Source: Selaginella moellendorffii (lineage: Eukaryota > Plantae > Lycopodiophyta). From it: DNA of 64,000 nucleotides. The stretch spans positions 62,001 to 126,000 of the forward strand of contig NW_003314395.1 of NCBI RefSeq assembly GCF_000143415.4. The letters are read 5' to 3'. The position numbers and the translations under genes are program-made. The notes below the pieces were generated by a model, which worked only from the letters and a program-made list of their open reading frames with translations, searched no databases and was not told the origin of the DNA. This document shows, in pieces, positions 4,759 through 64,000 of this stretch. The first letter of the stretch is position 1. Each line of letters begins with the position of its first letter.

Positions 4759-6972
4759 TCACCGCTTGTTTTGCTGTAACGTTCGGATAATCTCGGGATC
4801 CACATCGGCTCCAGCCTCAAGTGCCTCCTCCCAAATCTCCATCGCCTGGTCCATCTTTTCTTCGGCGACAAGCTTTGTCAAGAGTAAGCTGTACATGAAT
4901 GGTGTCGGAGAGCATCCCCGTGACTTCATCGCCTGGAAAAGCCGGAAGGCTTTGTCATGCTCCGCTGACTTCCAAAATCCATCGAAAACTGAGTTGTAGG
5001 TGACCGTGTCTGGCAGGCATCCGTCACTTTCCATGACTTCTAGCAAATGTATTGCTTCGTCCAGCCTGCCAACCTTGCAGAGCTTGTCGACGAGCACATT
5101 ATACGTAACCACCGTAGGAGCGCAGCCTGTTTGCTTCATCAACTTGTAGAGCTCGTAAGCCTCGTCGTAGGAATCGGACTTGCATAGTCCATCGATCACG
5201 CTGGTGTAAACTATAGCGTCTGGCGTCACGCCCCTTTCCAGCATGGTCTTCAGCAGCATGCAGCCGTCCCTCACGCGAGCAGACTTGCAGAGCTTGTCTA
5301 TGACAATGCTGTACGTTATCACCGTGGGCACGCATCCCTTGTCAAGCATTTCCGAGAAGAACGCCAGTGACTTGTCCAGCTGGTCTGCCTTGCAAAAGCC
5401 GTGGATGAGGATGGTGTAAGCCACCACATCTGGAGCACTCCCATTTCTTTCCATCTCCCTGAGTAGCTTCTCGGCATCATCCAGTCTTCTCGACTTGCAA
5501 AGTCCGTCAATGAGGGTGCTGCACGTTACGACGTCCAAGAAGTAGCCCCCGTTTCTAAGAACCTCGTACACCTCGTATGCCTCGTCGACTTGGGAAGCTT
5601 TGCACAAGCCAGAGACGATCGAGTTGTAAGTCACCACGTCGGGAGGACAGCCTGCTTCGGTCATGCGCTCTAGAAGCTGCCGAGCATCGTCAATCCTGTT
5701 TGCCCTGCAGGCCCCGGAGATCATAATGTTGTACGTGTATATATCCGGGAGACAGCCACGATCGGTCATAAGCTGGAAGAGCTCGTAGGCGAGGTCGAGT
5801 TGGCCGACTTTGCAGAACATATCGATCATCAAATTGAAAGTGAAGTGGCTCGGTTTACAGTCCCTCCGAAGCATCATCTGTGCCAGATTGAAAGCGTCAA
5901 TATACTTCCCAGACTTGACGAGGCTGTCCATGAGTGTGTTGTAAGTAATGAAGTTTGGCTCGCAGCCATACTTGACCATCTCTTGCAAGAGCTTGGCACC
6001 GTCTTGCGGTCTCTCTTGCTTGCAATACCCGTCGATGAGAATGTTGTACGTAAAAACGTCCGGCGAGCACGAGTTCTCCAGCATCTGGTTGAAGAGCACG
6101 ACCGCCTCGTCCATGTTGCCGAGCTTGCAAAACCCGTTGATGAGCGTGTTGTAAGTTACGACGTTGGGAGCACAGCCAGCCTCGATCATATCCTCGAGAA
6201 TGAGCGAGGCATCGCTTATCCTGGCAGACTTACACAAGGCGTCGACGAGAATGGTGTAAGTGATGACGGAGGGAGCGCAGTGGCGTTGCATATCCCTGTA
6301 GTGGACGAGCGCACTGTCGACCCTTCCATTGTCACAGAGTCCCTTGATGATCGTGTTATAGACCGCATTGTGTGGAACGATCCCTCTCTTCTCCATCTCA
6401 TCCAAAAGCCTGTAAGCCTGCTGGAAATCCCGGGCCTTGCAAAACCCATTGATCAAGGTGCTATACGTGATGCTGTCCGGAGAACACAATCCACAAAGGT
6501 GATTCTTGAAGAGGTCGTAAGCCTCCTGTGCCTTCTTCTTCCTCACGAACGCGCTGAGGAGGCAATTGCAAGTGAATTTCGAGTGCTTGTATCCTGGCTG
6601 CCCCGTGCACCAATCGAAAAACTTGATCGCCTTGTCCAGATCGTCCAGCTGCTGGAGCACCCTTCCCACCACCGATGGCACCAGGTAGCCCCCGAATTCA
6701 CACAGCCGCCTCCTCGCGAGCTCGAAATCCTCGCTGCTGTCTAAAACCCTAAGGAATTCCTTGGCGGCCTGGGCGTAGAAGATGCCAGACTTGGAGCTGG
6801 CACTGGCAGCCGCGAATTTCGAGGTGTGGAGCTTGAGATCGGGCTCCACTTCCCTGGTAGAGTGCCGCGGACTTACCCCGAGAGAGGATGCAAGGCAGAA
6901 TTTGGGCGGTGGCCTTCCTTTGCTGGTGGATGGAGCGGTGACACCAGCCGGAGCGCCCAGCGCTGTCGCCAT
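4759..6972 (-). CDS. P-class pentatricopeptide repeat protein with a putative organellar transit peptide
   Basis: Intronless 737-aa ORF with many 35-aa repeats (PDVVTYNSIVSGLCK...) and an S/A-rich N-terminus. Confidence 0.95.
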   Translation of the reverse strand: MATALGAPAGVTAPSTSKGRPPPKFCLASSLGVSPRHSTREVEPDLKLHTSKFAAASASSKSGIFYAQAAKEFLRVLDSSEDFELARRRLCEFGGYLVPSVVGRVLQQLDDLDKAIKFFDWCTGQPGYKHSKFTCNCLLSAFVRKKKAQEAYDLFKNHLCGLCSPDSITYSTLINGFCKARDFQQAYRLLDEMEKRGIVPHNAVYNTIIKGLCDNGRVDSALVHYRDMQRHCAPSVITYTILVDALCKSARISDASLILEDMIEAGCAPNVVTYNTLINGFCKLGNMDEAVVLFNQMLENSCSPDVFTYNILIDGYCKQERPQDGAKLLQEMVKYGCEPNFITYNTLMDSLVKSGKYIDAFNLAQMMLRRDCKPSHFTFNLMIDMFCKVGQLDLAYELFQLMTDRGCLPDIYTYNIMISGACRANRIDDARQLLERMTEAGCPPDVVTYNSIVSGLCKASQVDEAYEVYEVLRNGGYFLDVVTCSTLIDGLCKSRRLDDAEKLLREMERNGSAPDVVAYTILIHGFCKADQLDKSLAFFSEMLDKGCVPTVITYSIVIDKLCKSARVRDGCMLLKTMLERGVTPDAIVYTSVIDGLCKSDSYDEAYELYKLMKQTGCAPTVVTYNVLVDKLCKVGRLDEAIHLLEVMESDGCLPDTVTYNSVFDGFWKSAEHDKAFRLFQAMKSRGCSPTPFMYSLLLTKLVAEEKMDQAMEIWEEALEAGADVDPEIIRTLQQNKR

Positions 6973-32799: not shown

Positions 32800-33510
32800 A
32801 GCAAGGAGCACAGCTACAGGCAGGTCCAGTTCAACAATGGATGCCGCGGCTCTAGAGCCAAGCCCATGGATGCAAACTGTTGAGTGGCCCTGTGTCACGT
32901 GGCTACTTTCCAGTGGTTTGCCACGAAGCTTCTGGTTTCCGGCTGTCTTGACGGCAAACTATCTCCAGAACCGGCTCCCCACCTCTGCTGGCATCGCTCC
33001 TGAAGAAGCATGGAGTAGCAAGAAACCTACAGTTACGCATCTGAGAATATTCAGGTGTGAAGCGTGGGCACACATCCCTGACGGAATGCACAAGAAATTG
33101 GAGCAGGCTGTGTTTGTCGATCACAAAGCCTATCGTCTCTGAAATCCAATCACGAAGCAGGAGATCCTGAGCAGAGATGTGGTTTTCAACGTCCAGTCAA
33201 GGTTCTACATCCAAGCCTACCTTGACCGAAGAAAATGACGTTGAAGCGGAACAAGACCAGTTGACTGTCAGCATGATCACTGTGCCGCTTCAAACAGTCC
33301 CTACGCATCAACCCATGCCCGCTTCTACTCCAACACCACCAATGCCGCCGCCTCCTTCAGATCCTCCACGCAGATCGATCCGCACAAGGCGGCCTACTGA
33401 GCGTCTCATCGAGACAATGGTCTCATCTCGTGCAGCTGGGACTCCTACTGTTCCGAGGACCCATGAAGCCATGGCCTCACAGGAAGCGTCTTACTGGCGT
33501 GTAGCAATGT
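32800..33510 (+). mobile_element. Ty1/Copia pol fragment (integrase C-terminus to start of RT)
   Basis: 'SGLPRSFW..AV.TANYLQNRLPT...PEEAWS.KKP.V.HLRIF.C.AWAHIP...KAYRL*...SRDVVF' followed by 'PRT..EAM...W..AM'. Confidence 0.85.
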
Positions 33511-34845
33511 GAATCATGCTTAGCTAGTCTGAGATGATGAGCATGAAGAGCTGATGAGAAAGGCATATGAAAAACTCATCAATCAACTACCCAAAACTTA
33601 GTTTTTGGTCATGGACTTACTTGCACACTCTTTGCTCCTTGTTATGGCTTCAATCTTGCCACTAGCATGTGATCTTGGCTGTGAACTGCAAGGTTCTCAT
33701 TTCTACTACTACTAAGCACTTAAACCTCCAAAAGTATCCTTCCCAATTGCTGGAAGTTCCTACAAAGAATTGTTATCCTATGTTCTTGAATCTTGCTTGA
33801 TCTAATTTTTTATATAGGTTGCTGAAATCTCTCAATCTCCCACTGGCTTTATACTCTACTTGTTGCTCAGCACCTCTGCACAGCCTAGTGCCTTTAAGCA
33901 TCTAGCACATCTACCAAAAGCTTCAAGCAGTGCAAAAAGGGATTGCAATCAAGAGGCTCATCCTCCTCCTTGTCACTAGCCTCTTGGCTAGCAAGTTCCA
34001 TGCCCAAGATCAAGGAGCCAATTGCTTCAATACCATATTAGTAGTGGAGAGAGGAAGAACTTTTTGTGTATGCAACTGTATATGGATGGTACATATATAT
34101 GAAACTACTACCACATAGGCATAACTACATGCCACATCATCTCTACCACTCATGATCGATCCAAGCCTAAATCTAAGCCTGAATCATGCTTAGCTAGTAT
34201 GAGATGATAAGCATGGAGAGCTGATAAGAAAGGCATATAAAAAACTCATCAATCAACTACTTAAAACTTGGTTCTTGGTCTTGGACTTGCTTGCACACTC
34301 TTTGCTTTTTGCTATGGCTTCAATCTTGCCATTAGTATGTGGTCTTGGCTGTGAACTGCCAGGCTCCCACTTCTATAGCTACAAGCACTTAAATCTCCAT
34401 AAGCATCCTTCCTAATTGCTGGAAGTTCCTGCAAAGAATTATTATGCTACGTTTTTGAATCTTCTTTGATCCAATTTTTGATATGGGTTGCTAAAATCTC
34501 TCAATCTCCCACTAGCTTTATGCTCTGCTTGCTACTACTTGCTGCTCAGCACTTCTACATGGCCTGGTGCCTTCAAGCATCTAGCAGATCTACCAAAAGC
34601 TTCAAGCATTGCAAAAAGGGATTGCAATCAGAAGGCTCATCCTCCTCCTCGTCATTGGCCTCCTAACTAGCAAGCACCATGCCCAGGATCAAGGAGCCAA
34701 TTGCTCTAATACCATGTTAGTAGTAGAGAGATTTGCACAAGGAGGAAGAACTTCCTATATATTCAACTGTATATGGATGGTATATATGTATGAAACTACT
34801 ACCATGTAGGCATAACTACATGCCACATCATCTCTACCTCTAACA
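33510..34845 (-). mobile_element. Two tandem truncated copies of a short-LTR retroelement 5' end (LTR + PBS + gag-like start)
   Basis: Direct repeats at about 33510-34150 and 34180-34840. LTR 34715-34845 (TGTTAG...CTAACA); adjacent GCTCTAATACCA is the reverse complement of an iMet-type PBS. Confidence 0.75.
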
Positions 34846-35899
34846 ATCGCAAAGGGCTGGGACTTTCTCCACTGATGAGCATCACTTGTGATGGCCACAG
34901 TGCCAATGGGAGTGTTGAGAGCAGCCCTATGCCATGTGACTAGTCCACGTGGAGAGACACAAGTCTTCACTAGTTCACTGTGTATGAGTCCTCACCAGTT
35001 CATCGTGTCATACATATGTACATTTCCATTCCATATATGCTATGATAGATCTTGAGCACCATCACATGGTTTCACCTTTCATTAGAGCACTATCCTTTGG
35101 AGCAGTGGTATAGTTTTGTCATGCCTCACTAGCAGAATACCCATGCCCCAAGCCCCAGCAGCTCAATGGTTTCCAACCTTTCATGCTAGAATGCTTATCA
35201 AAATCTGATTGTGCCTTAGCAGCACACAATTTACATTTCACAACCTATGAGCTGGAAATCCATCTTGACAAGGGACCTCTGCCAAGATCCAGAGATAGAC
35301 AAGGTTGCATAATTGGTCCAGCTCATCAAATGGGCCATTTTGTTTTCATTCACCCGCAACAATTTTACATAACACATCTAGATAATAAGTTGGCTGAAGA
35401 GCATCCTCTAGATGAATGGCTTCCAAATTTGAATAAGGAGGTGTTGGTATTGTTTTTATTGATGATGCTATGAGAGGTTTTTAAGAGTGCAAAACACAAA
35501 TTGTCAATCATTAATAATCTCTTGTATCCATCGTGGGACTGCGGTACAGGTGGATGACTAGTTGCCTCACATAAAATAGCTGGTCTACACAATAGAATAA
35601 TTGGTAGATTCAGTGTGGAAATGAAAGTGTTGGTTCCCCTTGGCTCAATAGGGGTTGTTAAACAATAGTCAATGAACAGTTGTTGTAACTACCTTCATTT
35701 CTGGTTTTTTGAAGCTTGAGGGCAAGGAAAGAAAGGTAGTAGAAAGAAGGGTTGGACTTTCTATTTTTCAGTTTCTTATGAAGGTAAGGTAATGAAGCTA
35801 TATAGTGATCAATCTATATAAATCTATGGAGGAACTAGAACTTACTAAACTATCCACTGAGAACCAATCTAATGAGCTAATGAATGGCTGAATTTGAGA

Positions 35900-39334: not shown

Positions 39335-39875
39335 TGTAGTGTGTGTGGTTTTTGACCTTTATCCTATGGTGATTTACCATAGGATAACACCACAAAGTGG
39401 AACCTAAACCTTCTTTATGCCACATAACACATGCCATGTATTATATGCCACGTGTCCAAAGAACAATAGTGTGGAACCCAAGGTTCAGGGCCTTGGGCCA
39501 CTAAATGAAGGAACGGTGCCAAACTCCCAAGCATGGAGCTAAATAACAATGAAACCGGACCACAGAGCAACTCCCAAGTATATAACTTAAGGAGCAAAGG
39601 GACAGGAGCCCAGAGTGACTTGGAACAGTCCTAGAGCAACTAACATCCCTTTATTAGGACTAACACGCAAAATGAAGCCAAATGGAGTCTGGCATTATTT
39701 CGGCATACCAGTGGCCTAACGCAATGATATGGGTACTCCACCAGCTAGTATGGAATGGAACTTGGGCTTAGACCCAAGTTGGACACAGAACAAGGATAGG
39801 CACGCAAGTGGGAGGTAGACTATGCCTCAGGTTAGTCAGCCATACCCGACCTACCCACTATCCCTACTATACATT
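39335..39875 (-). mobile_element. LTR (putative 3' LTR), related to 54126-54490
   Basis: Starts TGTAG and shares 'gtggtttt(t)gacc..ttatcctatggtgatttaccataggataa...ggaacctaaac'. The C-run at about 39890-39901 may be a PPT (reverse complement). Right end uncertain. Confidence 0.6.
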
Positions 39876-41896: not shown

Positions 41897-44800
41897 CAAC
41901 GGTGCCGCCACTACTACCGTTGGTCCTGGCGGAGGTTTGCCAGCTTGTTAAGGAGGCCATGGGCTGTTGGGGTGGATCTAGCAAAGCGGTGAGAGATCAT
42001 GAATCTTTTTATTCTCCTCCTGCTACTATTTCCTCCTTTATTTCAGTGTGAGGATTTCATATCCCACCATGAGGCGCTCATTAAGCAGCGGTTGGCAATG
42101 GTAGAACAACGATTGCAAGAGTTGTTGAAGCAGTTGCCACCGCTGATACCACCCCTGTAGCAGCAGCAACCACCGCCGCCGCTGCCTCCTCCGTCCCTGC
42201 CCTGCGGCACTCAACGGTGCCGCCACTGCTACCGTTGGTCCTGGCGGAGGTTCACCAGCTTGTTAAGGAGGTCATGGGCTTTTGGGATGGATCTAGCAAA
42301 GCGGTGAAAGATCATGAATCTTTTTATTCTCCTCTTGCTATTGTTTCCTCGTCTATTTCAAAGTCAGGATTTCATATTCCACCGTCAGGCGCTCACTAAG
42401 CAGCGATTGGCAATGGTAGAACAGCGATTGCAAGAGTCCACCCCTGCAGCAGCAGCAGCCACCGCCGCCGCTGCTTCCTCCGTCTCGGCCCTGCAGCACT
42501 CAACGGTGCTGCCATTGCTACCGTTGGTCCTGGCGGAGGTTCACCAGCTTGTTAACGAGGTCATGGGCTTTTGGGGTGGATCTAGCAAAGCGGTGAGAGA
42601 TCATGAATCTTTTTATTCTCCTCCTGCTATTGTTTTGTCCTCTATTTCAGAGTGAGGATTTCATATCCCACCGTCAGGCGCTCACTAAGCAACGATTGGC
42701 AATGGTAGAACAGCGATTGCAAGAGCTGTGAAGCAGTGCCGCCGCTGAAACCACCCTGCAATTGNNNNNNNNNNNNNNNNNNNNNNNNNNNNNNNNNNNN
42801 NNNNNNNNNNNNNNNNNNNNNNNNNNNNNNNNNNNNNNNNNNNNNNNNNNNNNNNNNNNNNNNNAAAACAATAGCAGCAGGACAATAAAAAGATTCATGA
42901 TCTCTCACCGCTTTGCTAGATCCACCCCAAAAGCCCATGACCTCCTTAACAAGCCGGTGAACCTCCGCCAGGACCAACGGTAGCAGTGGCGGCACCGTTG
43001 AGTGTCGCAGGGTCGGGATGGAGGAGGCACCGGCGGCGGTGGCTGCTGCTGCTGCAGGGGTGGTATCAGCGGCGGCAACTGCTTCAACAGCTCTTGCAAT
43101 CGCTTTTCTACCATTGCCATTCATTGGTTAGTGAGCGCTTGATGTTGGGATATGAAATCCTGACTCTGAAATAGAGGACGGAACAGTAGTAGGAAGAGAA
43201 TAAAAAGATTCATGATCTCTCACCGCTTTGCTAGATCCACCCGAACAGCCCATGGCCTCTTTAACAAGCCGGCGAACCTCTGCCAGGACCAGCGGTAGCA
43301 GTGGCGGCACCGTTGAGTGCCGCAGGGCCGGGGACGGAGGAAGCAGCGGTGGCGGTGGCTACTGCTGTTGCAAGGGTGGTATTAGCAGTGGCAACTGCTT
43401 CAACAGCTCTTGCAATCGTTGTTCTACCATTGCCAATCGCTGCTTAGTGAGTGCCTGACGGTGGGATATGAAATCCTCACTCTGAAATAGAGGAGGAAAC
43501 AGTAGCAGGAGCAGAATAAAAGATCATGATCTCTCACCGCTTTGCTAGATCCATCCCAAAAGCGCATGACCTCCTTAACAAGCCGGCGAACCTACGCCAG
43601 GACCAGCGGTAGCAGTGGCGGCACCGTTGAGTGCCGCAGGGCCGGGGACGGAGGAAGCAGCGGCGGCGGTGGCTGCTGCTATTGCAGGGGTGGTATCAGC
43701 GGCGGCAACTGCTTCAACAACTCTTGCAATCGTTGTCCTACCATTGCAAATCGCTGCTTAGTGAGCGCCTGACGGTGGGATATGAAATCCTCACTTTGAA
43801 ATAGAGGAGGAAACAATAGCAGGAGGAGAATAACAAGATCCATGATCTCTCACCGCTTTACTAGATCCACCCCAAAAGCCCATGGCCTCCTTAACAAGCT
43901 GGCGAACCTCCGCCAGGACCAACGGTAGTAGTGGCGGCACCGTTGAGTGCCGCAGGGCCGGGACGGAGGAGGCACCGGTGGCGGTGGCTGCTGCTGCTGC
44001 AGGGGTGGTATCAACGGCGGCAACTGCTTGAACAGCTCGTACAATTGCTGTTCTACCATTGCAATTCGCTGCTTAGTGAGTGCCTGACGGTGGGATATGA
44101 AATCCTCACTCTGAAATAGAGGAGGAAACAGTAGCAGGAGGAGAATAAAAAGATTCATGATCTCTCACCGCTTTGCTAGATCCATCCCAAAAGCGCATGA
44201 CCTCCTTAACAAGCCGGCGAACCTACGCCAGGACCAGCGGTAGCAGTGGCGGCACCGTTGAGTGCCGCAGGGCCGGGGACGGAGGAAGCAGCGGCGGCGG
44301 TGGCTGCTGCTATTGCAGGGGTGGTATCAGCGGCGGCAACTGCTTCAACAACTCTTGCAATCGTTGTCCTACCATTGCAAATCGCTGCTTAGTGAGCGCC
44401 TGACGGTGGGATATGAAATCCTCACTTTGAAATAGAGGAGGAAACAATAGCAGGAGGAGAATAACAAGATCCATGATCTCTCACCGCTTTACTAGATCCA
44501 CCCCAAAAGCCCATGGCCTCCTTAACAAGCTGGCGAACCTCCGCCAGGACCAACGGTAGTAGTGGCGGCACCGTTGAGTGCTGTAGGGCCGCGGACGGAG
44601 GAGGTGGCAGCAGCGGCGACTGCTGCTATTGGAAGGGTGGTTTCAGCAACGGCAACTGCTTGAACAGCTCGTACAATTGCTGTTCTACCATTGCCAATCG
44701 TTGCTTAGTGAGCGCCTAAGGGTGGGATATGAAATCCTCACTCTGAAATAGAGGAGGAAACAATAGCAGAAGGAGAATAAAAAGATTCATGATCTCTCAC

Positions 44801-46800
44801 CGCTTTGCTAGATCCACCCCAAAAGCCCATGGCCTCCTTAACAAGCTGGCGAACCTCCGCCATGACCAACGGTAGCAGTAGCGGCACCGTTGAGTGCCGC
44901 AGGGCTAGGGACGGAGGAGGCAGCGGCAGCGGTGGCTGCTGCTGCTGCAAGGGTGGTATCAGCGGTGGCAACTGCTTCAACAGGTCCTGCAATCGCTGTT
45001 CTACCATTGCAATTCGCTGCTTAGTGAGCGCCTGACGGTGGGATATGAAATCCTCACTCTGAAATAGATGACGAAACAATAGCAGCAGGACAATAAAAAG
45101 ATTCATGATCTCTCACCGCTTTGCTAGATCCACCCCAAAAGCCCATGACCTCCTTAACAAGCCGGTGAACCTCCGCCAGGACCAACGGTAGCAGTGGCGG
45201 CACCGTTGAGTGTCGCAGGGTCGGGATGGAGGAGGCACCGGCGGCGGTGGCTGCTGCTGCTGCAGGGGTGGTATCAGCGGCGGCAACTGCTTCAACAATT
45301 CTTGCAATCGCTGTTCTACCATTGCCAATCATTGCTTAGTGAGTGCCTGACGGTGGGATATGAAATCCTGACTCTGAAATAGAGGACGGAACAGTAGTAG
45401 GAAGAGAATAAAAAGATTCATGATCTCTCACCGCTTTGCTAGATCCACCCGAACAGCCCATGGCCTCCTTAACAAGCCGGCGAACCTCTGCCAGGACCAA
45501 CGGTAGCAGTGGCGGCACCGTTGAGTGCCGCAGGGCCGGGGACGGAGGAAGCAGCGGTGGCGGTGGCTACTGCTGTTGCAAGGGTGGTATTAGCAGTGGC
45601 AACTGCTTCAACAGCTCTTGCAATCGTTGTTCTACCATTGCCAATCGCTGCTTAGTGAGCGCCTGACGGTGGGATATGAAATCCTCTCTTTGAAATAGAG
45701 GAGGAAACAGTAGAAGGAGGAGAATAACAAGATCCATGATCTCTCACCGCTTTGCTAGATCCACCCCAAAAGCCCATGACCTCCTTAACAAGCCGGCGAA
45801 CCTCTGCCAGGACCAGCGGTAGCAGTGGCGGCAGCGGTGGCTACTGCTGTTGCAAGGGTGGTTTCAATGGCGGCAATTGCTTCAACAGCTCTTGCAATCG
45901 CTGTTCTACCATTGCCAATCGTTGCTTAGTGAGCGCCTGACGGTGGGATATGAAATCTTCACTCTGAAATAGAGGAGGAAACAGTAGGAGTAACAGAATA
46001 AAAAGATTCATGATATCTCACCGCTTTGCTAGATCCATCCCAACAGCCCATGGCCTCCTTAACAAGCTGGCGAACCTCTGCCAGGACCAGCGGTAGCAGT
46101 GGCGGCACCATTGAGTGCCACAGGGCTAGGGACGGAGGAGGCAGCGGCGGCGGTGGCTGCTGCTGCTGCAGGGGTGGTATCAGCGGTGGCAACTGCTTCA
46201 ATAGCTCTTGCAATCGCTGTTCTACCATTGCAATTCGCTGCTTAGTGAGTGCCTGATGGTGGGATATGAAATCCTCACTCTGAAATAGAGGAGGAAACAG
46301 TAGCAGGAGGAGAATAAAAAGATTCATGATCTCTCACCGCTTTGCTAGATCCACCCCAACAGCCTAAGCCCTCCTTAACAAGCCGGCGAACCTCCGCCAA
46401 GACCAGGAGTAGCAGTGGCGGCACCGTTGAGTGCCGCAGGGCCGGGGACGGAGGAGGCAACGGCGGCGGTGGCTGCTGCTGCTACAGGGGTGGTATCAGC
46501 GGTGGCAACCTATTTTAGAGTGAGGATTTCATATCCCACCGTCAGGCGTTCACTAAGCAGCAAATTGCAATGGTAGAATAGCGATTGCAGGAGTTGTTGA
46601 AGCAAGGAGGAAACAGTAGTAGGAGGAGAATAAAAAGATTCATGATCTCTCACCGCTTTGCTACATCCACCCCAAAAGCCCATGGCCTCCTTAACAAGCC
46701 GGCGAACCTCCGCCAGGACCAGCAGTAGCAGTGGCGGCACCGTTGAGTGCCACAGGGCCAGGACAGAGGAGGCAGCGGCGGCGGTGGATGCTGCTGCTAC
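41897..46800. repeat. Tandem array of about 15 x 316-bp units (58-nt intron + 258-nt exon); + arm 41897-42764, - arm 42865-46800
   Basis: Marker 'ctctgaaatag' (with variants) recurs at 43164, 43480, 43794, 44109, 44425, 44741, 45057, 45372, 45688, 45962 and 46278. Confidence 0.97.
42765..42864. other. Assembly gap (100 N)
   Basis: Run of N. Confidence 1.
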
Positions 46801-48199
46801 ACGGGACTTAATCTATCATTCATCCCAATCTTTGTGAGTTTCATCAGTCACTAATATAAGCCTTTGAAGATTATCCATAATGAACTAGATGATTTTGCTC
46901 TTCTCCTTCAAGTAAAAGAGATCCACCATATGCTTGATAAAGCATATCAAGGTGGGAAAGAGGATAAATCCTCCAAACATTTCTTTTTGTTATAAAATGA
47001 AGTTGTAAGGAAGGATTTTACAAACATTCTAGTATGCAAGATGCCAAATATCAAAGGATCATTATTATTTGATAAAGCCTATATGTCAAAACAAACAATT
47101 AAGGAGTTTTTTTTATGAATCTCTTGATCTACACCTAAATGCATATTGCTAGGTGTAGGTAAGCCACCATAAAGAAAATTATAATATGGAGGGACATTTT
47201 CTTCCAGATCCATGAAAAAAAGATATCTTCATTAGGCATCTTTTTATTCTTTTTTGTCTTAAAATTTTTGTGTCTTTTGCGATGAGTTTGTAGAATCAAT
47301 AAATCTCTAAATTGGGAAAAAGAACAAGTAAAATAAAAAGCCTTGACACTTATATATTGTCACTTATAAAAAAGCAAACCCTACCCCAATTTGTGCCCTA
47401 ACTAGAGCCCTAATGCATTATAGTAATGAAGAGAAAAATAAAGTGCCAAATGTATTATTACACAAATTTACAAGGTAGGAACTCCCAAATTGCTGCATAA
47501 AAACACTAAATAAAAAATAAAAAATATCCAAAATAAAAAAATTAAGTACATCGAACTTACTTATTGATACAATTTCAATAAGTTTATCCATATCCATATA
47601 TTTGGTGTTGATAAACAAAACAATAAAACAAATATGCTTTTCTTTTACCAAAAGAAAATACTTTTTGATCATTATGGTTTATACCTATTCCATCCACCCC
47701 AAAAATAAAAGCCCCAAATGTTGGCTCCACTTAAGATCCTTAGTTAACTCCTTCTCAAACTCTACATCCTACTCAATTAAACACTAATCCTAGTCCATCT
47801 TAGTATGTGGTATATTTAAAGAAAAAAATGAAGTTTATTTCTCTAACAATGTTTATTTACTCAAGAATAATACAATTTTAGAATAAGAATAAGAATTACA
47901 AAGAAAATTTAGAGAACTAAAGATTAGAATTGAGACATTATAACTACAATAATAGAGTCAATCGATTCCTCAAGTAAAATGCAAAATTTTAAATTTAACC
48001 CAAAAAATAGTGTTTATATGAATGTTTTAATTTAAGAAAAAAAATTATCTTGGAAAAGTTAATATATAATTACCCACACGGATTCATAATTCCAATTATC
48101 AAATCAATTTCAAGAAGATGTAGAATGAAGGAGTGTTACAATTTTGTCATAAGTATTATATGGATAAGCTTCCATTAAAGTATAATAAATATGCTACTT

Positions 48200-50359: not shown

Positions 50360-53300
50360 TGGCATTGATATATGGAGGTGAGTAGTCTCGTTGCATACGC
50401 AGAGATGAAAATGATGATCCGAGTGAGTATACTTTTGGGTGCACAAGCTTCGCAATTGTTCCTTAGGTATGGATTTTAGTTACCTTTTGTACCATATTAT
50501 GTGAGCTTGCTCTTGGGCTCATAAAAGGGATTGAGTTGGCAAGATGGATTTGAGGTGTACTACAATCCCACGGTGGATACCTTCATCTGTGGATACTCTA
50601 CACAAAAGAAGGGATGTATGCATGAATGCCCAATACATACGATTTAAAATTTAAGGGTAGGAATATACCTTGCTCAAGGGTATATTATATTTTTAAGTAG
50701 CCATTAATTAATGGGAATCAAACCCGTGCCATTTTCTTTATAACGTTATGCTTGGTGGCAAATTGCACCTTGCATTTCATTAAGACTCTATGAGAGTAGT
50801 GAGCTCTCACTGATCTTGACTTGGTTTGAGTGGCCTTGCGCTTTGGCTGAGGATGGTGATGTCCAACTTAGTTGTTTGAGGTTGAGATGTTGGTACCCAT
50901 ACTATAGCTCAGTCTATCAGGAGGTTGTGTACCAATATAAATCCATTTCATGATCTTCATTTTAGTTTCAATTAAGTGTTGGTCATGTATAGATAGCCTC
51001 TTCAAGGTATGCTCAGAACTAGTGGCTAAATGCATTAGTGAACTTATTGCGGTTGAGTTGGATTCGAGTGGTCATTTAGTTTATGCTAGTCCATGAACCT
51101 TTATCTTGTATCTGGGGTATTACATTCATGCTAAACAAGTATATGACTCGATGGCATGAGTTTAGTGTTGGGTCTTGTGAAGGCAAGTTGAAATAGTGAT
51201 TATTAGTTGCTTGCGACTAGTGATTGCTTGTAAACTTCATCAAGGACTGTGGACACTTGCTTCGCTCGATGATGATTTATCAGTGATGGGCTTGCTTTAC
51301 TGGATGGTGTTGCAGAGGATCGTATGGTTAAATTTACATGGTTTTTCCATGTTGGCATATTGACTCTACCTTTGTTGATATCATTTGGTTACATTTAATT
51401 TGTAGTGTTGGATTTCATTGAGTCTTGGACATGGTGAATCACTCCTTCATGATGTGTTATATGTAACTGAGTATTGTTGGAGGATTGGTTTCGAATACTG
51501 AGTAAAGTATTTTCGACTTTGGTTAACTTGGTTGCTGGAGAGCTTTAAGTGGTGATTCACTCTTGCTTCCTTCTAGCTTTGTTATGGTGTTGATGGCATT
51601 GAAGGGATGCTTTGTCGTTAACATAGTTGATATTAAAATTTGAGTGAAATGAAATGTCTCTCTATAAGATTGATATTGAGTTTCATTAGTCTCGATAAAT
51701 ATAGTGTTGCTGATTTGGCTATGGCTTTGTGTTATTAGCATTTTTGCATTTGCTAATTAGCAACTATATTGATGTTCAAATGAACTGAGTTGCAAGTTGA
51801 GTTAGTTATGTTCTAGGCGAGATTGTTTAGTAGGGGTTGAGTTTTGAGCTTTTTCTTGAAAAGTGATTTAGTCATGGACTATACTAACTCTACAAGAGGA
51901 AGAGTTAGTGATCGATATTGGAATGTTTGAATCTTTATTAGATTTGAGTTGGAATATATTGATCATTAATAACTCTTCTTGTGTTTGTTATAAAGTGAGT
52001 TACATCTTGCTATAGATGGATTCATGGAAGATCGTTTAATGATCATTTGTTGAGCATAACTTCAATATACTTAACTTTTAGATTTATGTAGACATGCTTT
52101 TCATTAGCTTTGTATTATAAAGTTTAGCTTATGGATGTGTTGATGAGGATATTATGGATTGTGCTATAATTTCTTCTTTGACATTAAAATAAGTTCATGC
52201 AAGATTTGTGATCATTTTAGGTAAGATTTTGTTATAAACTTCTTCGAGCTTTTGGTTCCTTGAGTTTTATGCTCATTGTTCCATTTGTTAAAAGTTGTTG
52301 GGGAAGGCATTCTAACTTATATCTTCACTATTGAAGTTAGTATTTACATCTGGCAATCATTAGTGATGATTGACTATCATCTAAGCTAATTGATTATCCT
52401 CATCAAAAGGTTTTTCTTGATTGTTGTTAATACAGAATGATTTGCTATTCTTCGAGATGGTGTAGTCGTTCTTTGATGATAATTTTGCATATCTCTTTTT
52501 GATGGGATGATCGATGATTTTTCATAATGGTTGGTTATGCTATTTGATAGCTTATGGCTTTTTGCAATACCACATGTTCTTTGTGGTTTGTTCTAGATTG
52601 GTCTTTTGGGTTTGAGATATCCGTAGGATGTTGCTAACACTTGCTAAAGCAACTTGAGTTCTTTTGTATTATTAACCGAGATCTATTTAGATTGGCTTCT
52701 ATGATAGTTAGCATGAATGAGTGTTTGTTGGTTTTACCACATTTATTTTGTTTTGCTGATTATTGTTTGAGTTAGTTTTAATAAATTATTATGTTATTTC
52801 CTTCGAGTGATATATTCGCGAGCATTTTGTTTGCCAGTTGATGATACTTTGTATTCTTTGAGTTGCCTTTCGTAAGTTCTTTGGCATTCTGTCTATAATT
52901 TTTGACCCTTATGTTTTGTCATTTAGTGTCCTTAATGATACACTAGCTATTGAATTTTGTTGGATAGTGAATCTTATGTTTTCCGAACATACTGATCTTG
53001 GTGGTTCCTATACTCTAATACTGGTTTATCGGATGATAACTTACTTAGAATACTTTTGTGTTCTAATATAAGATTTAATCATTGATACTTAAGACTCTCA
53101 GATATCATTATCTATGACTTTGATATTGTCCAATTATTGATCTTTGAGTTTGGGTCAATATATATAGATTGGCTTCAGCACTTCGTGTGCATGGTGAAAT
53201 CTCTAGTTTTGGGGTAGCTACTGTCGATTGGTCATATCACCTGCCTCTCTATCAATATTCCTTATTCCATTAAAAGGACATGACCGTGTAAACAATTCTA

Positions 53301-53430
53301 ATTGCTTGTTTACAGTCGTCTATCTAAACCTTACTGACGGGTTTGGTTTCTTTGCTTAGGAGGGTTGAGGCCTCTGGCTTCTCTCTCTATGTCCCTGTAG
53401 GTAGGGGCATATCACACTTTTGTAAGCTGA
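50360..53430 (+). mobile_element. Decayed LTR-retroelement internal region
   Basis: 50398-50555 is an inverted copy of the post-PBS region 53899-54055; downstream sequence is T-rich, CpG-poor and stop-riddled. Confidence 0.45.
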
Positions 53431-53530
53431 NNNNNNNNNNNNNNNNNNNNNNNNNNNNNNNNNNNNNNNNNNNNNNNNNNNNNNNNNNNNNNNNNNNNNN
53501 NNNNNNNNNNNNNNNNNNNNNNNNNNNNNN
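53431..53530. other. Assembly gap (100 N)
   Basis: Run of N. Confidence 1.
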
Positions 53531-54111
53531 GTACTACTACTTTGGACCAAACCTCAAACTTGCTTTCACACTGCCTTCAATCCAATCCAAAAAAAGTTTA
53601 TGAGAGAGCACGACAATGAGTACTTGAATTAATAGACTCATCCTTACAATCTTTGATTGATCCACTTTTAATCATGCCTAGGAAGGATCCACTAGTGCTA
53701 TGCTAAACAGCTATGGACCAGCCTATTTGCCACTCATAGCAAACCTAAGGGAGGTTTACTTTCACCCAAGGTACATGGAACAACTTATGGAACCACCAAT
53801 AGACTAACATTAATTCTGCCAACTCAAAGTGTAACCTTGAGTTGTTAATGTGCCTCATTCACGAGCCCAAGCATAAGCTCATGCAAAATGGTACACCTTA
53901 AATCCATCTTGCCAACTCAATCCCTTTTATAAGCCGAAGAGCAAGCTCACATTATTATGGTACAAAAAGGTAACAAAGTCCATACCCAAGGAACAATTGC
54001 AAAGCCTTTGCACCCAAATGTGTACCCATTCAGATTATCGTTTTCATCTCTGCATATATAATGAGATTAGTTGCCCAATCTCATTGGATAGTACTTGCTG
54101 AGACTCATGCC

Positions 54112-54490
54112 CTCTAATACCAAATGTAGCGCATGTGGTTTTGACCCTTTATCCTATGGTGATTTACCATAGGATAACCACAGAAGCGGAACCTAAACTT
54201 TCCATGTGCCACATATCATATACCACATCTCTAAAGAACAGTGGTGTGGAACTCAAGTTTCAATGCCTTGGGCCATTGAATGAAGGAATGGTGCTAAACT
54301 CCCAATCATGGAGCCAAGAAGCAATGGCACTAGAGCACAGGATGACTCCCGAGCATATAACCCAAAGAGCGAAAGGATAGAAGTATGGAGCGACTTAGAA
54401 CAATCTTGGAGTATCCAGCATCCCAATGCTAGGACCAGCACGCAAAATGGAGCTTCCACCACTTAGCATGGTCTAGAACTGGAACATTTC
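54112..54490 (-). mobile_element. PBS plus 5' LTR of a minus-strand LTR element
   Basis: CTCTAATACCA (reverse complement TGGTATTAGAG) lies 2 nt from TGTAGC at 54126; homologous to 39335 onward. Confidence 0.7.
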
Positions 54491-54519: not shown

Positions 54520-57500
54520 TTGTTTCGGCAAAGTTTGTTGTAGATCATGGCTTGGTCACACGCGGAGTTCCTCCATATATGGTGGAAGGTGCAACTACCT
54601 CTACTTAGCATTTTGATGCTTGTGTAGAGGGGCTGGAAGTGTTAATTGGCAAAACCATACTTGTGGAGACTTTTTATCTCATAGATATCTATTGTGTGGA
54701 TTTCATTCTTAGGATGACATGGCCGGTGAAAGTGAATCCGAAGATAAAGTGGAGTATTAAGTGTGTCTCACTGGAGTACAGTGGCATTAAAAATGTGTGG
54801 TTTGGAGAGGGAATTCAACCTCCAATTATTATGCTCTCTGCTACATCTTTGAAGTGAGCTTGTCGTAATGGAAAAACACTTTCAAGTTACTTATTGTTTG
54901 TTCGTGACTTGGGGGACCAAGGCACTTGTGGCAGAGAAGCAGTAGTACGGGATGTACTCGATGAGTTTTCCGATGTTTTTCTATCTGAACTTCCTCATGG
55001 GTTGCCTCCATTACAAGGTGTCGAGCATAGGATTATGTTGGAGCCAAGGACACGGCCAATTTACCAGCGTCCATTTCGGTTAAGTTATGCAAAGGAGCAA
55101 GAAGTTCAACGACAACTCAAGGAGTTACTTGAGTTTGAATTTATTTAGCCAAGTAAGTCTTTGTTTGGTGCTCCAGTCTTGCTTGTGAAGAAGAAGGATG
55201 GTTCAATGCAAATGTGTATTGACTATTATGCCTTGAATAAAAAGAAGGTGAAAGATAAGATGCCAATGCCACATATGGATGATATCTTAGACAAACTTGG
55301 TGAAACATGAGTGTTTACCAAGATTGATCTAAGGAGTGGATATCATTAAATTGCAATCTATCTTCAATACAACATTCAATACAAGCTTTAAGCATTTTGA
55401 GTTTACAGTTATGCCGTTTGGTTTGCCAAATACACTAGCCACATTTACTCGATTGATGATGGAGGTATTTGGGTGTTATCTTCATGAGTTTGTGAAGATT
55501 TTCTTGGACGATATTTTTGTTTTCAGCAAGAATATGGAAGAGCATAAGGTGCATTTGTGCAAAGTTCTTTTGTTACTCTTTGACAACAAACTTTATGCGA
55601 AGAAGAACAAATGTGAGTTTGCAAAGTCAGAGATGGAATATCTAAGCCATATTGTGATATCTAAAGGTCCAAGGAAGGTAGCTATGGTGGAGAATTAGCC
55701 TACACCAACTACAGTGGCAAAGTTATGTAGTTTCCTTGGAATGGGTAGTTAATACTGATGTTTCCAACATAAGTTTGCGGAAGTGGCTATTCCTTTGACA
55801 CGGTTGTTACGCAAAAATGTGCCTTTCTAGTGGAAGAAGCCACAAGAGGAGAGTTTTGTGGCGCTGAAATGGTTGTTGAGCGAGGTTCTAGTGTTTCGTA
55901 TTGTTATGTGGTGGCAGATGCCTTATTTCATATTTGTCATGTGATGGCGTTATAAACACGATTTGATCATCATTTGAGTAAGATGGTCAACGAATTTGGG
56001 CAGTTGGTTGAGCATGCTCAGGCTCAAGATGCTAAGGTGGCCTCTTTGCAAGATCAGATGGAAGCCCCTTTCTCATTGGTGGATGGGATTCTACTACAAT
56101 GGTCGTGTCTATTTGCCACGAGTAGATGCATTAATTACTCAAGTTTTATTCTACTATCATGATCGTTTAGAGGTCGGTCATTTTGGGGGGAAAAAGACAT
56201 ATGAGTTGATTAAACACAATTTTTATTAGAGGAATATGAAGGCTGATATCCTTGAGTATTGTAAATCATGCGAGCTCTGTCAATGAGTTAAGGAGAAGCT
56301 AAGGGGACTTTTGCAACCTTTACTTATTCCTTACAACTGTTGGTGTAGTATCTCTATGGACTTCATCACTTATTTACCACGAACACAGAGGCAAAAAGAA
56401 CAAGTATGGGTCATAGTGGATCGATTGACGAAGTATGTTCGGTTGTTGGATCTTTGAAAGACTGTCACTGCCTCAAACTTGGCTGCGGTCTACTTGGAGA
56501 AGGTTTTTCCTGATTTTGGTTTGCCGAAAGATATCATTAGTAATCGAGATTCAAAGTTCACAAGTGAATTTTGGAAGAGCTTTGTGAAGGCTATGCAAGT
56601 GACTTTGAAACTCTTGAGTGGCAATCATCTTTAGACGGATAGGCAAACCAAGCATGTGAATCAGGTGGTGGAGGATATGCTACGTTGTAGCATTGGTCAA
56701 AGGCAAGGATAGTGGGATTTATATCTTCTATTGGTGCAATTTGTTTACAACAATAGCCAGCATAGTGGAACCAAACTAAGTCTTTACATTGCCATGTTTG
56801 AAAGGCACCCCCAAACAGCAGTGGAGTTGGGATTGCATTTGAGTAAGAACATTCAAAATAAATTTGATTTAGAGGTAATTGATCTAGCCATAGAACTTGA
56901 TGAGATTCTGGTGGTGTGCAAACAAAATTTGCATGCATCTCAGGATAGAGCGGAGAAGTTTGCTAATGAGTATTACTAATTCTGGGAATATAAGGTGGGT
57001 GATCTCGTCTTTGTGTGAGTGATCTTTACGTCAAATGAGTGGCGAAACACCTTGGTGCCTTTACGGACAGGGAAGAGTGATAAACTTTCCCATCGATATG
57101 CTGGTTCATATGAAGTGCTAGAGCACATTGGTAAAGTGGCTTATCAGGTGTGGCTACTAACTAGGGTGAAAATTCATCTAATATTTTATGTCAGCCAGTT
57201 GAAAGGTGTACTATCTTGAAGTGATGGGCTCAATGCCTCCTTGATATATACGGCTATGGAAGATGGACTAAGAGCTTGAGCAGGGTTCCCCAGAAAGGGT
57301 AATCACTGGTACAACTTTTTTTTCAATCAAAATCTTAATTAGACCCGGGGGGGGGGGGGGGGGAGAATTGTTGGATGCCAGCTTTGACCACATGGTCAAT
57401 GTTAGTCAAAGGGAGGCTCAAGGGTATATTAAGGCATATTAGGATAAGGGACTTAACCTACCCTAAGGCTCACAGTGGAGTGGCGGCATAGAGGAGCTTT

Positions 57501-58057: not shown

Positions 58058-59560
58058 TCACGCAGTTCTACGACGCCGCAAACATAAGAAGTCAATTAGG
58101 TTCTCTCGGACCTCCTGTGCATCCTCTAGCCAATGCAAGTTTTCTTGTGGTTCTCCCTCAGCCACAATAGGATCCCCGTAATCTTCAAAAATCTCTGCTT
58201 CCTTCAAGGCTTGAATGTGTTTCTCCCATGCTTTGATCTTGGCATTGATGTTTGTTTCACCAACATTAATCAAGAAGTTGTGCAAGATGCAACAACTTTT
58301 GATGATGTTCGGTTGGTACTTCGGCTTGATCCTTTGTTTTTGATCCAAGCATTTGAATTTCATTTTCAAGAGTCCAAATGCTTGTTCAATAACAATCCGA
58401 GCTAGATGGTGTTGCTGGTTGTACTCCGCCTTAGTCACTGTCAACCAGGAACCTGTTTCAAATGAATAATTGAAAAAAAAAAAAAAAACAATCAACTTAC
58501 CCAAGTGAGGGATCATCAAGTGCTGTTGCAACTGGTAACCTTTGTCTCCCACCAAGTATGGCTCAATCCACTCGTCAAAAGCAAACTCCCGAGGAACTGT
58601 GAGTAATTCCCTTGCTTGGATCTTGTGGCATAGCCTAGAGTTCTGAAAAACCCTCATGTCATGAACACCCCCTGGAAAAAAAAAAACCAATTAAATGTAT
58701 AGAAGAAAAAATTAAAAGTAATTACTTGGCCAGCCTGCATAAATACTCAAGAACCTTTTCTAAGCATGACAAACCCCCTGCAAGATCACTGAGTACCATT
58801 GCTTTCAATCAAAGTAGCCCTCACCATCCGGGCAAACTGGTTGAATAATCTCAAAATGTGTACAATCGATCGCCCCAGCCACATTAGGGAGACGAGTCTT
58901 GGTGATTTGCTGAAAATCTACCGCCACAACTCTAACCTCCACTGTTGTCTCTGGGAATCGAATCTTGTACCTGAGGCACTTGACGATTGCAGCAGTTGTC
59001 TGCACCACAATGTCATGTGCAGTGGCTTCCCCAATCCCAAACTTGTCAAACAGGTCGGAGTAGTTGGTGTTCTTGAACAACTTGTACAAAGTGACCCCCA
59101 AATGAACATCCACTGGCACTGCTCTCCTAAACTTTGTATCCTGCTTGCAAATTTCAGCCTCTAGAATGCCATAAAGCCCAAAGAACGTCTTCTTCTGCTT
59201 CCATCGACCTGGGTCATACAACTCCATGAAGAACTTGCTCCATATTGTCATACACCGTGGCTTCACCCACTAGAGACCGGTGTCAAGTCGCTTGGACAAG
59301 ACTGCTCGACAAAGCTTGTCTTCGTCCTCCTCCTCCTCTGGAAAAGTTTGTGCCACCGGGGTCTTGTCATTGATAATGGATTGAAAAGCCTCCACAGCGA
59401 GAAACAAAACTTGCAAAATAAGCAAGATTACCTTGTTCCTCAATAAGGCATTGATGACTGCTGCTTGATTGTTGAAAGAACCACGTTCCTCCTGAGCATC
59501 TCTTTGGTTTTCCTCAAAACCATCTTCTGTTTCCTCGGGTTGAATTGTTGCAAGATCCTG
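58058..59560 (-). pseudogene. Harbinger DDE transposase (HARBI1-like) with nonsense mutations
   Basis: 'GAIDCTHF', 'GGVHDMRVF', 'LVGDKGY', 'RIVIEQAFGLLK', 'CCILHNF'; stops at 59270, 58805 and 58760. Confidence 0.9.
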
Positions 59561-62810: not shown

Positions 62811-63029
62811 TGTTCCTGACACTTCCATGTGTCTCCTTCTTGTGTCCCTTTTTAAAGACTCATTCACCAGTTGTTTCATGCTCATTCATCGAGCACTTTG
62901 TTTGGAGCTCCACTCCCACTCTTGACTTTCCAAGTTGGAGCATTTGGTCTAAATATGTTATGTTTGTTGGAATTCTACTTTAACCATTACCATGTGGCAT
63001 CCTTTTTGCTCCACTTTAGGGTTTAGGGA

Positions 63030-63620
63030 TTTATGTCTCATAACCCGCTCACAGTCTATAGACCAAATGAAAGATAGCGTTGATGACTTTAGTAAAGTTT
63101 GCAACGGTGCAGTGCAATTAAAAAGATAATCAACAAAATGATTGAGATGCTGCACCTTGCCCAAGAAGCATTATATATCATTCACACACTTTAGAGTAAG
63201 GAACTTTAGAATAACCACAAGTTTATCATAATCAACTTGCAAACCCTCATAAGAAATACAGTACCCAAGATAAGTCGTGTTTTTGGACCTAAACACACAC
63301 TTCAACCACTTCAACTTTAAACCAACTTTTTATAATCGATCTAACACATTACAAACATCATAGACGTATTCTTTCCGCATCCCCTTTGAGTGGATCACTA
63401 AATGCCATATTGCATTACGAACTCAAACAACCCTTGACAAAAATGATGCAATTGTTGAAAAGCATCATCACAATCGTCTGCATATCCATATGCACATTTA
63501 AAGACGTCCAGGAGAATACTCTAATCTTCATAAGTGGCTGTGCTCAAATTATTGTACTATTGCAACATCATCCTTTAGAGACACATAAAAAATTCATATA
63601 AATGCTGAGTATCATCTTAA
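63030..63620 (-). mobile_element. Decayed Gypsy RT / RNase H linker remnant
   Basis: 'VLDRL*KVGLKLKWLKCVF...YLGYCIS.EGL...CFLGKVQHL.HF'. Confidence 0.75.
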
Positions 63621-64000
63621 GAATGATATGTGGCAATCACTATGAAGTGATCGAACTAATGCTACATATCATCCCCATTATTCCCACAAAAGAACTCTAG
63701 CTGGACTTGAGGATTGGTAGCAAGAGTAGGAAGAGCTATACCACACACCATAAATGCCACCATCAACTAAGTTTGATTGTTTAACTGCAACCACATAACA
63801 TTGAGCAATTGCACCAATTGTTGCTCTTGAATCAAAGCAAGAGGAGGCTGCTACTTTGCCATAAAAATAAATGAGAAGGAAAAAAAAAAACAAAAAAGAA
63901 GAAATTGAAAAATCTATAAAGAAAAGTAGATCTAGACAATGCAAAAACTAGATCTACAGTAGAATCCCAAATCTAACACTTTTCAAGAACAATCAAAATT

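Follow-up and report, generated by a model that had tools for sequence, protein, structure and literature searches.

A 316-bp tandem array in Selaginella moellendorffii, probably a neutral satellite born from a fragment of a longer gene-like sequence

The window analysed here is a stretch of 64,000 nt from the spikemoss Selaginella moellendorffii (GL377699.1, 62,001-126,000). At 41897-46805 it contains a tandem array with a period of 316 bp, composed of about 16 units in two inverted blocks (about 103.9-108.8 kb of GL377699.1). With a probability of roughly 80%, this array is a real, neutral, non-coding satellite that originated from a fragment of a longer, lineage-specific gene-like sequence. 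The satellite is probably methylated. An earlier note on the same stretch had read each unit as one intron plus one symmetric phase-0 exon and had proposed either a gene-derived satellite or a bank of cassette exons for a repetitive protein. Only part of this interpretation is supported: The gene-derived satellite is broadly right, as a longer progenitor bearing an open reading frame (ORF) exists elsewhere in the genome. The intron-plus-exon structure and the cassette bank were not upheld. This removes the attractive reading as an 'exon satellite' or exon bank and leaves an ordinary neutral satellite.

The 316-bp period proposed in the note was confirmed both by Tandem Repeats Finder and by conserved boundary motifs. 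The program detected period 316 at 42866-45833 (9.4 copies, 89% matches, score 4760) and a second 316-bp stretch at 45828-46805. Units were delimited by cutting at the conserved AAAGCG|GTGAGAGATCATG (AAAGCG|GTGAGA) and were then aligned. The boundary motif is present three times on the plus strand and 13 times on the minus strand with a spacing of 274-316 bp (n=16). The left block (41897-42764) has its sense orientation on the plus strand. It starts with a partial unit (41897-41988), continues with the units 41989-42303 and 42304-42592, the latter carrying a 27-nt deletion, and ends with a partial unit (42593-42764) that extends up to an assembly gap of 100 N (42765-42864). The right block (42865-46805) is sense on the minus strand and comprises 12 full units, among them M1 (46338-46653), and a partial unit at each end. 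Neither outer end of the array coincides with a unit boundary: The left end falls at unit position 222 and the right end at 164, and both adjoin unrelated AT-rich DNA. No first or last exon was found beside them, in agreement with what had been noticed before.

The division of the unit into a 58-nt GT-AG segment and 258 remaining nt was borne out. In 11 of 12 full units parsed (M1 was left out for its inversion), the piece from GTGAGA to TTTCAG is 58 nt long, and in unit 43224-43537 a 2-nt loss reduces it to 56 nt. The remainder measures 258 nt unless deleted: Four units lack 1 nt in a C run (257 nt), one lacks 42 nt and one 27 nt, and the two larger deletions are in frame. Stop codons are present in seven of 13 aligned units, with M8 and the identical M10 counted as one; a single unit has two stops and the others have one. 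In four units, the 'acceptor' AG is replaced by AA. Hence, the 42-nt in-frame deletion, the 2-nt loss in the 'intron' and all types of damage listed in the note (stops, a 1-nt deletion, AG to AA) were seen in the aligned units. An open frame combined with both splice-like sites is confined to two units, both on the minus strand: 44801-45116 with the 58-nt piece at 45059-45116 and the 258 nt at 44801-45058, and 46022-46337 with the 258 nt at 46022-46279. These are the two 'exons' that had been designated as clean, and they are the sole two intact ones; 10 of the 12 full units are disabled. The two intact ATG-to-stop ORFs of the array (122 aa) are not on record among public called genes.

A protein search with the 86-aa peptide led, by way of two gene models, to the longer progenitor on two other S. 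moellendorffii scaffolds, GL377595.1 (locus L001; long form at about 1,213,300-1,214,500 of the scaffold) and GL377648.1 (locus L002). Long forms of the repeat are located at L002 6560-7330, 6020-6620 and 2000-1270 (minus strand) and at L001 8240-9200. They were aligned through the whole unit to a dimer of the window consensus. The long forms hold unit positions 293-316 followed contiguously by positions 1-292 and extend past both ends. On the upstream side, the 58-nt piece is preceded by ...TTAATTAGGGC|TCTTGGGGTGGATCTAGCAAAGCG, and on the downstream side the sequence continues as ...ATGGGC|GAGAAGATGTGTCCA (EKMCPMVEEPSM...). Downstream at the junction, the sequence ...AAGGAGGCTATGGGC|GAGAAGATGTGTCCAATGGTTGAGGAG... 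codes for EKMCPMVEEPSMAEESML and then for a Pro-rich part. Since the long-form sequence runs on beyond the unit at both ends, the unit is the stretch between two GGGC motifs, arranged head-to-tail. An example of this tandem-duplication junction is the GGGC microhomology at 44825-44828 on the minus strand, which corresponds to unit positions 289-292. Independent public DNA runs confirm this origin: Some contigs pass from the unit into the downstream or upstream sequence of the long forms precisely at 44825 and 44828, and others show the tandem 316-bp join.

The order of events can be deduced from an old paralog, paralog A (L001 5320-4715, minus strand), which shows about 70% identity and contains an undamaged ORF of 202 codons with a hydrophobic C-terminus. 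Body and downstream part are contiguous in paralog A, which means that the long form is ancestral and the 316-bp unit derived. The satellite was most probably born when a 316-bp piece of the progenitor was duplicated head to tail at the 4-nt GGGC microhomology. This piece comprised 24 nt of the upstream leader, the 58-nt tract, in which the in-frame ATG opens a hydrophobic N-terminal stretch, and 78 further codons (234 nt, SEDF...KEAMG). Subsequent amplification and reshuffling probably occurred via unequal crossing-over and small inversions. The 202-codon orphan ORF is composed of coiled-coil-like, Pro-rich, acidic and hydrophobic C-terminal parts and has not been called as a gene. At L001, a PWP2-like WD40 reading frame and the long form are arranged head to head. 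This frame (L001 6150-8440, minus strand) is truncated and matches PWP2 chains with E 4e-29; only the neighbouring 244-aa ORF is clearly PWP2-like. The ORF of 88 aa that immediately precedes the long forms has no significant match in PDB or Pfam; the fragment abutting the long forms presumably belongs to the PWP2-like frame.

The position of the junction has consequences for the presumed exon. It is located 24 nt before the 'donor', so that what had been regarded as a symmetric phase-0 exon is a junction chimera. In the progenitor, the first 234 nt of the 258-nt 'exon' are found downstream of the 58-nt piece, and the final 24 nt, TTTTGGGGTGGATCTAGCAAAGCG (FWGGSSKA; 44801-44824, minus strand), are upstream leader. 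Furthermore, frame 0 is closed by a stop codon 8-9 codons before the 'donor' in 5 of 5 long forms, with further stops beyond. As the final 24 nt come from upstream of the 58-nt piece and are preceded by these stops, the 86-codon exon has never existed as an exon. The divisibility of 258 by three is a one-in-three accident of the junction position. Genes for repetitive proteins may grow by tandem duplication of exon-plus-intron cassettes, as in the nebulin type or the mucin type. The array is similar to such genes in that the unit length becomes divisible by three once the GT..AG piece is subtracted, and splicing would thus keep the frame. It differs from them, however, since it has neither a first nor a last exon, most of its units are broken, its frame is not under selection and the 3' end of its chimeric 'exon' was non-coding in the progenitor. 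A bank of cassette exons is not supported by these properties.

The copies of the array show no coding constraint. Nucleotide diversity is equal in the two parts of the unit, with values of 0.097 for the 'intron' and 0.092 for the 'exon'. When distinct changes from the consensus are counted once each, 34 are synonymous, 44 missense and 7 nonsense. These fractions (0.40/0.52/0.08) compare with 0.37/0.57/0.06 predicted from the observed mutation spectrum. In-frame stops are not depleted: 12 were observed vs. 9.9 +/- 3.0 expected under random placement. G>A or C>T account for 68% of the changes, and CpG transitions make up a quarter of all changes. The dominance of G>A and C>T fits methylated, silent repeats, and on this basis we infer methylation. 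Judged from the sequence, the array would be silent, methylated, heterochromatin-like DNA without a protein product.

Several observations weigh against a neutral satellite that descends from a gene fragment. Codon third positions are more variable (0.114 vs. 0.081), and this mild excess reflects composition. Pairwise dN/dS (the ratio of nonsynonymous to synonymous substitution rates) is 0.43 in the frame used in the note, with stop codons excluded. As an indication of constraint this value was rejected, because it disregards stops, a control frame on the reverse strand with the same third positions yields 0.42 (other control frames 0.56-1.19) and the event-based test against the observed mutation spectrum shows no constraint. 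Thus, the comparison of dN/dS and of exon with intron divergence that had been proposed earlier resulted in a low ratio matched by its control, in equal divergence and in agreement with the neutral expectation. As for the progenitor, its status as a real protein-coding gene is uncertain on the basis of its sequence: dN/dS between paralog A and a long form is only 0.47, and relatives outside the species did not turn up. The 86-aa peptide, the long-form ORF (137 aa) and paralog A (202 aa) match no family in Pfam. With the peptide as query, 1.8 billion representative proteins were searched exhaustively by HMMER, which returned three matches, two of them S. moellendorffii gene models on related repeats and one a low-complexity match. 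A word-indexed protein search yielded nothing beyond one S. moellendorffii model, and a feature-atlas search gave no usable match for the peptides of repeat and progenitor. Within the window, blastn and tblastn with unit and peptide found no parent gene or other copy outside the array, and parts of the long form were not found in the flanks. A run search with a stretch of the array provided no match on record as RNA. Finally, the donor GT is intact in 16 of 16 copies, and in length and appearance the tract resembles a short plant intron.

The last point leads to the alternative of a genuine spliceosomal intron: The 58-nt GT..AG piece might, for instance, have been an intron in the 5'-untranslated region (UTR) of the progenitor that was carried into the satellite. 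In this case, any transcripts of the array would undergo splicing, and stretches of intact units would result in an in-frame repetitive message. Besides the retained GT, which is also found in three of four L002 long forms, the GTGAGA donor, the pyrimidine tract, the TTTCAG acceptor, the length of 58 nt in 11 of the 12 full units parsed and the divisibility of 258 by three speak for an intron. Nevertheless, this alternative is unlikely. In all long forms, the required frame is closed by the stops that precede the donor, so that the piece could be a UTR intron at most. In addition, the tract contains an in-frame ATG with a hydrophobic stretch. In the example at 44743-44800 (minus strand), an ATG at 44788-44790, i.e. 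nt 11-13 of the 58-nt piece, is in frame with the body in the next 258 nt. The piece can therefore be parsed as a leader of 10 nt and a start codon that opens an in-frame run of 16 hydrophobic codons, and it reads MNLFILLLLLFPPLFQ|SEDFISHRQ... This means, the pyrimidine tract represents Leu/Phe/Pro codons. Both the in-frame ATG and MNLFILLLLLFPPLFQ are present in all array units and long forms. From the sequence, this parse appears equally good or better, although an open frame through a pyrimidine tract alone is not strong evidence for it.

Comparison with diverged relatives also argues against an intron. In copy D (L001, 81% identical), a 21-nt deletion removes both the GT donor and that ATG, and an in-frame ATG follows four codons on. 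Paralog A is devoid of the whole tract and has an ATG start at the same place. Neither of the two public gene models on relatives of the repeat uses the 58-nt 'intron', and one of them, P0003, reads straight through the tract in copy D. Within the array, the acceptor is lost in the four AA units and most units are broken as described above. Among the Logan contigs of four runs, none skips 44743-44800, which reveals no intron-less DNA copy but is not a test of splicing. The 58-nt tract is, with good probability, the leader and start of an old ORF and not an intron.

The array displays the dynamics to be expected from satellite DNA. The mean identity among units is about 90%. Units 44169-44484 and 43538-43853, which are two units apart, are identical, and three consecutive units near the gap match those seven positions away at 96.5%, 97.1% and 100%. 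The right block holds higher-order duplications of two units (631 bp) and of seven units (2208 bp). Furthermore, a precise 95-bp inversion (46510-46604, plus strand; unit positions 50-144) is located within unit M1. Recurring identical units and an inversion are typical of a satellite that undergoes unequal exchange. Satellite DNA generally evolves by unequal crossing-over and forms higher-order repeats. The array shares with this class monomers in head-to-tail arrangement with fixed length and about 90% identity, re-duplicated blocks of two and seven units, small inversions, a neutral, transition-biased decay and the occurrence of numerous variants at other places in the genome. GL377648.1 and GL377595.1 carry related arrays and long forms, and many variants were detected in independent DNA runs; 186 contigs from one DNA run map to a single unit. 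In contrast to the general class, a specific ORF-bearing progenitor can be assigned to the monomer, and the GGGC junction of its birth is still readable. The array is a clean example of satellite birth, since it has preserved a legible record of the progenitor, of the exact junction at the microhomology and of the earliest higher-order duplications. Full-text literature searching turned up no published account of a comparable Selaginella satellite.

The two blocks converge tail to tail on the gap at 42765-42864, across which the orientation of the repeat flips. To the left of the gap, a sense unit ends at about unit position 167, and its final ~40 nt contain small indels that look like a low-quality contig end. 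To the right, the reverse complement begins at unit position 43. Since both sides are oppositely oriented, they are neither continuous nor in frame, whatever the length of the gap. The gap hides either an inversion point or a wrong scaffold join. In the latter case, the inverted two-block layout would be an assembly artefact due to a mis-oriented contig, and there would truly be one or two head-to-tail arrays. This is a plausible alternative with odds somewhat below even. It would explain why the flip falls exactly at the 100-N gap and why the left block closes with sequence of low-quality appearance, and it is in accord with the right contig (42865-53430) being bounded by two gaps. On the other hand, the outer flanks of both blocks are unique, and the genuine small inversion in M1 demonstrates that inversions happen here. 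Only the layout is at stake; the identity of the repeat is not affected.

The progenitor has given rise to further tandem structures on L002. A satellite of 10 kb with a 419-bp unit (L002 6900-16740) comprises unit positions 35-292 and the downstream part and is 80-85% identical to the 316-bp unit over the shared positions. It is similar to the 316-bp array with regard to its progenitor, mixed orientation features and decayed frames. It differs in that its unit extends further downstream (EKMCPMVEEPSM..., Pro-rich) and lacks leader, GT 'donor' and ATG. At each of its unit junctions, three to four CCCTAAA repeats of the telomere type are inserted, some of which are reversed (GGTTTAG). A sister satellite with telomere-type repeats in its junctions is useful for the study of satellite origins. 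The public model P0001 (297 aa; L002 8001-9807), which sits on the 419-bp satellite, combines two different frames of its repeat and is probably an annotation artefact. Caution is therefore needed in annotation, as two public gene models lie on relatives of the repeat and at least one of them mixes frames. A tandem duplication of ~533 bp (L002 6315-6866) contains unit positions 1-262 and about 270 nt of the upstream PWP2-looking fragment and appears to have been joined at a GAAGA microhomology. Elsewhere on L002, (TAAACCC)10 at 5914-5982 abuts a retrotransposon gag ORF (5474-5923).

A more speculative extension would regard one progenitor of ~1 kb, the orphan ORF head to head with the PWP2-like fragment, as a satellite 'nursery'. 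At least three independent tandem families may have emerged from it: the 316-bp family via GGGC, the 533-bp duplication via GAAGA and the 419-bp family closed by telomere-type repeats. Each 316-bp unit retains leader, ATG and a signal-like peptide. According to this proposal, which is very unlikely as a whole, the few intact units could express small peptides, or the convergent blocks could yield a hairpin RNA that silences the family.

The array is embedded in AT-rich, transposon-littered DNA. Remnants of a copia-like integrase are located at 32837-33512, ORF fragments of a gypsy-like reverse transcriptase at 54894-55698, and an ORF for a DDE transposase of the Harbinger/PIF type at 58058-58690 (Pfam DDE_Tnp_4, E 9e-22). 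There is no called gene within 10 kb of the array and none between about 32.6 and 38.9 kb. These surroundings raise the question whether the array is a tandem repeat within a transposable element, or owes its location to one, instead of being a free-standing satellite. On L002, the relatives adjoin the gag ORF, and the long form together with the PWP2-looking fragment, whose match is not significant, recurs several times in both orientations. Still, an origin from a transposable element is very unlikely, as neither terminal inverted repeats nor long terminal repeats surround the array, no inverted or direct repeats bracket it, the ORFs of unit and long form have no Pfam match and the array ends mid-unit in unrelated flanks. 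The sole match from flank to flank is a dispersed repeat of 345 bp with 75% identity, 2-7 kb away from the array.

This dispersed repeat is found in direct orientation on either side of the array at 39335-39678 and 54125-54453. Some further repeats were observed in the window. Two tandem copies of a ~670-bp unit (33510-34849, 87-88% identity) adjoin the copia-like remnants. Inverted arms of ~180 nt at 50383-50560 and 53891-54069, which are 80-94% complementary, enclose 3.3 kb including the second gap (53431-53530); the element at 50383-54069 is possibly a DNA transposon. About 0.9 kb at 63044-63971 is 75-79% identical to L001 11143-13696 in reverse orientation and represents a shared dispersed repeat. 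(CCCTAAA)2 occurs at 63015-63028. In addition, the window encodes two pentatricopeptide repeat (PPR) proteins.

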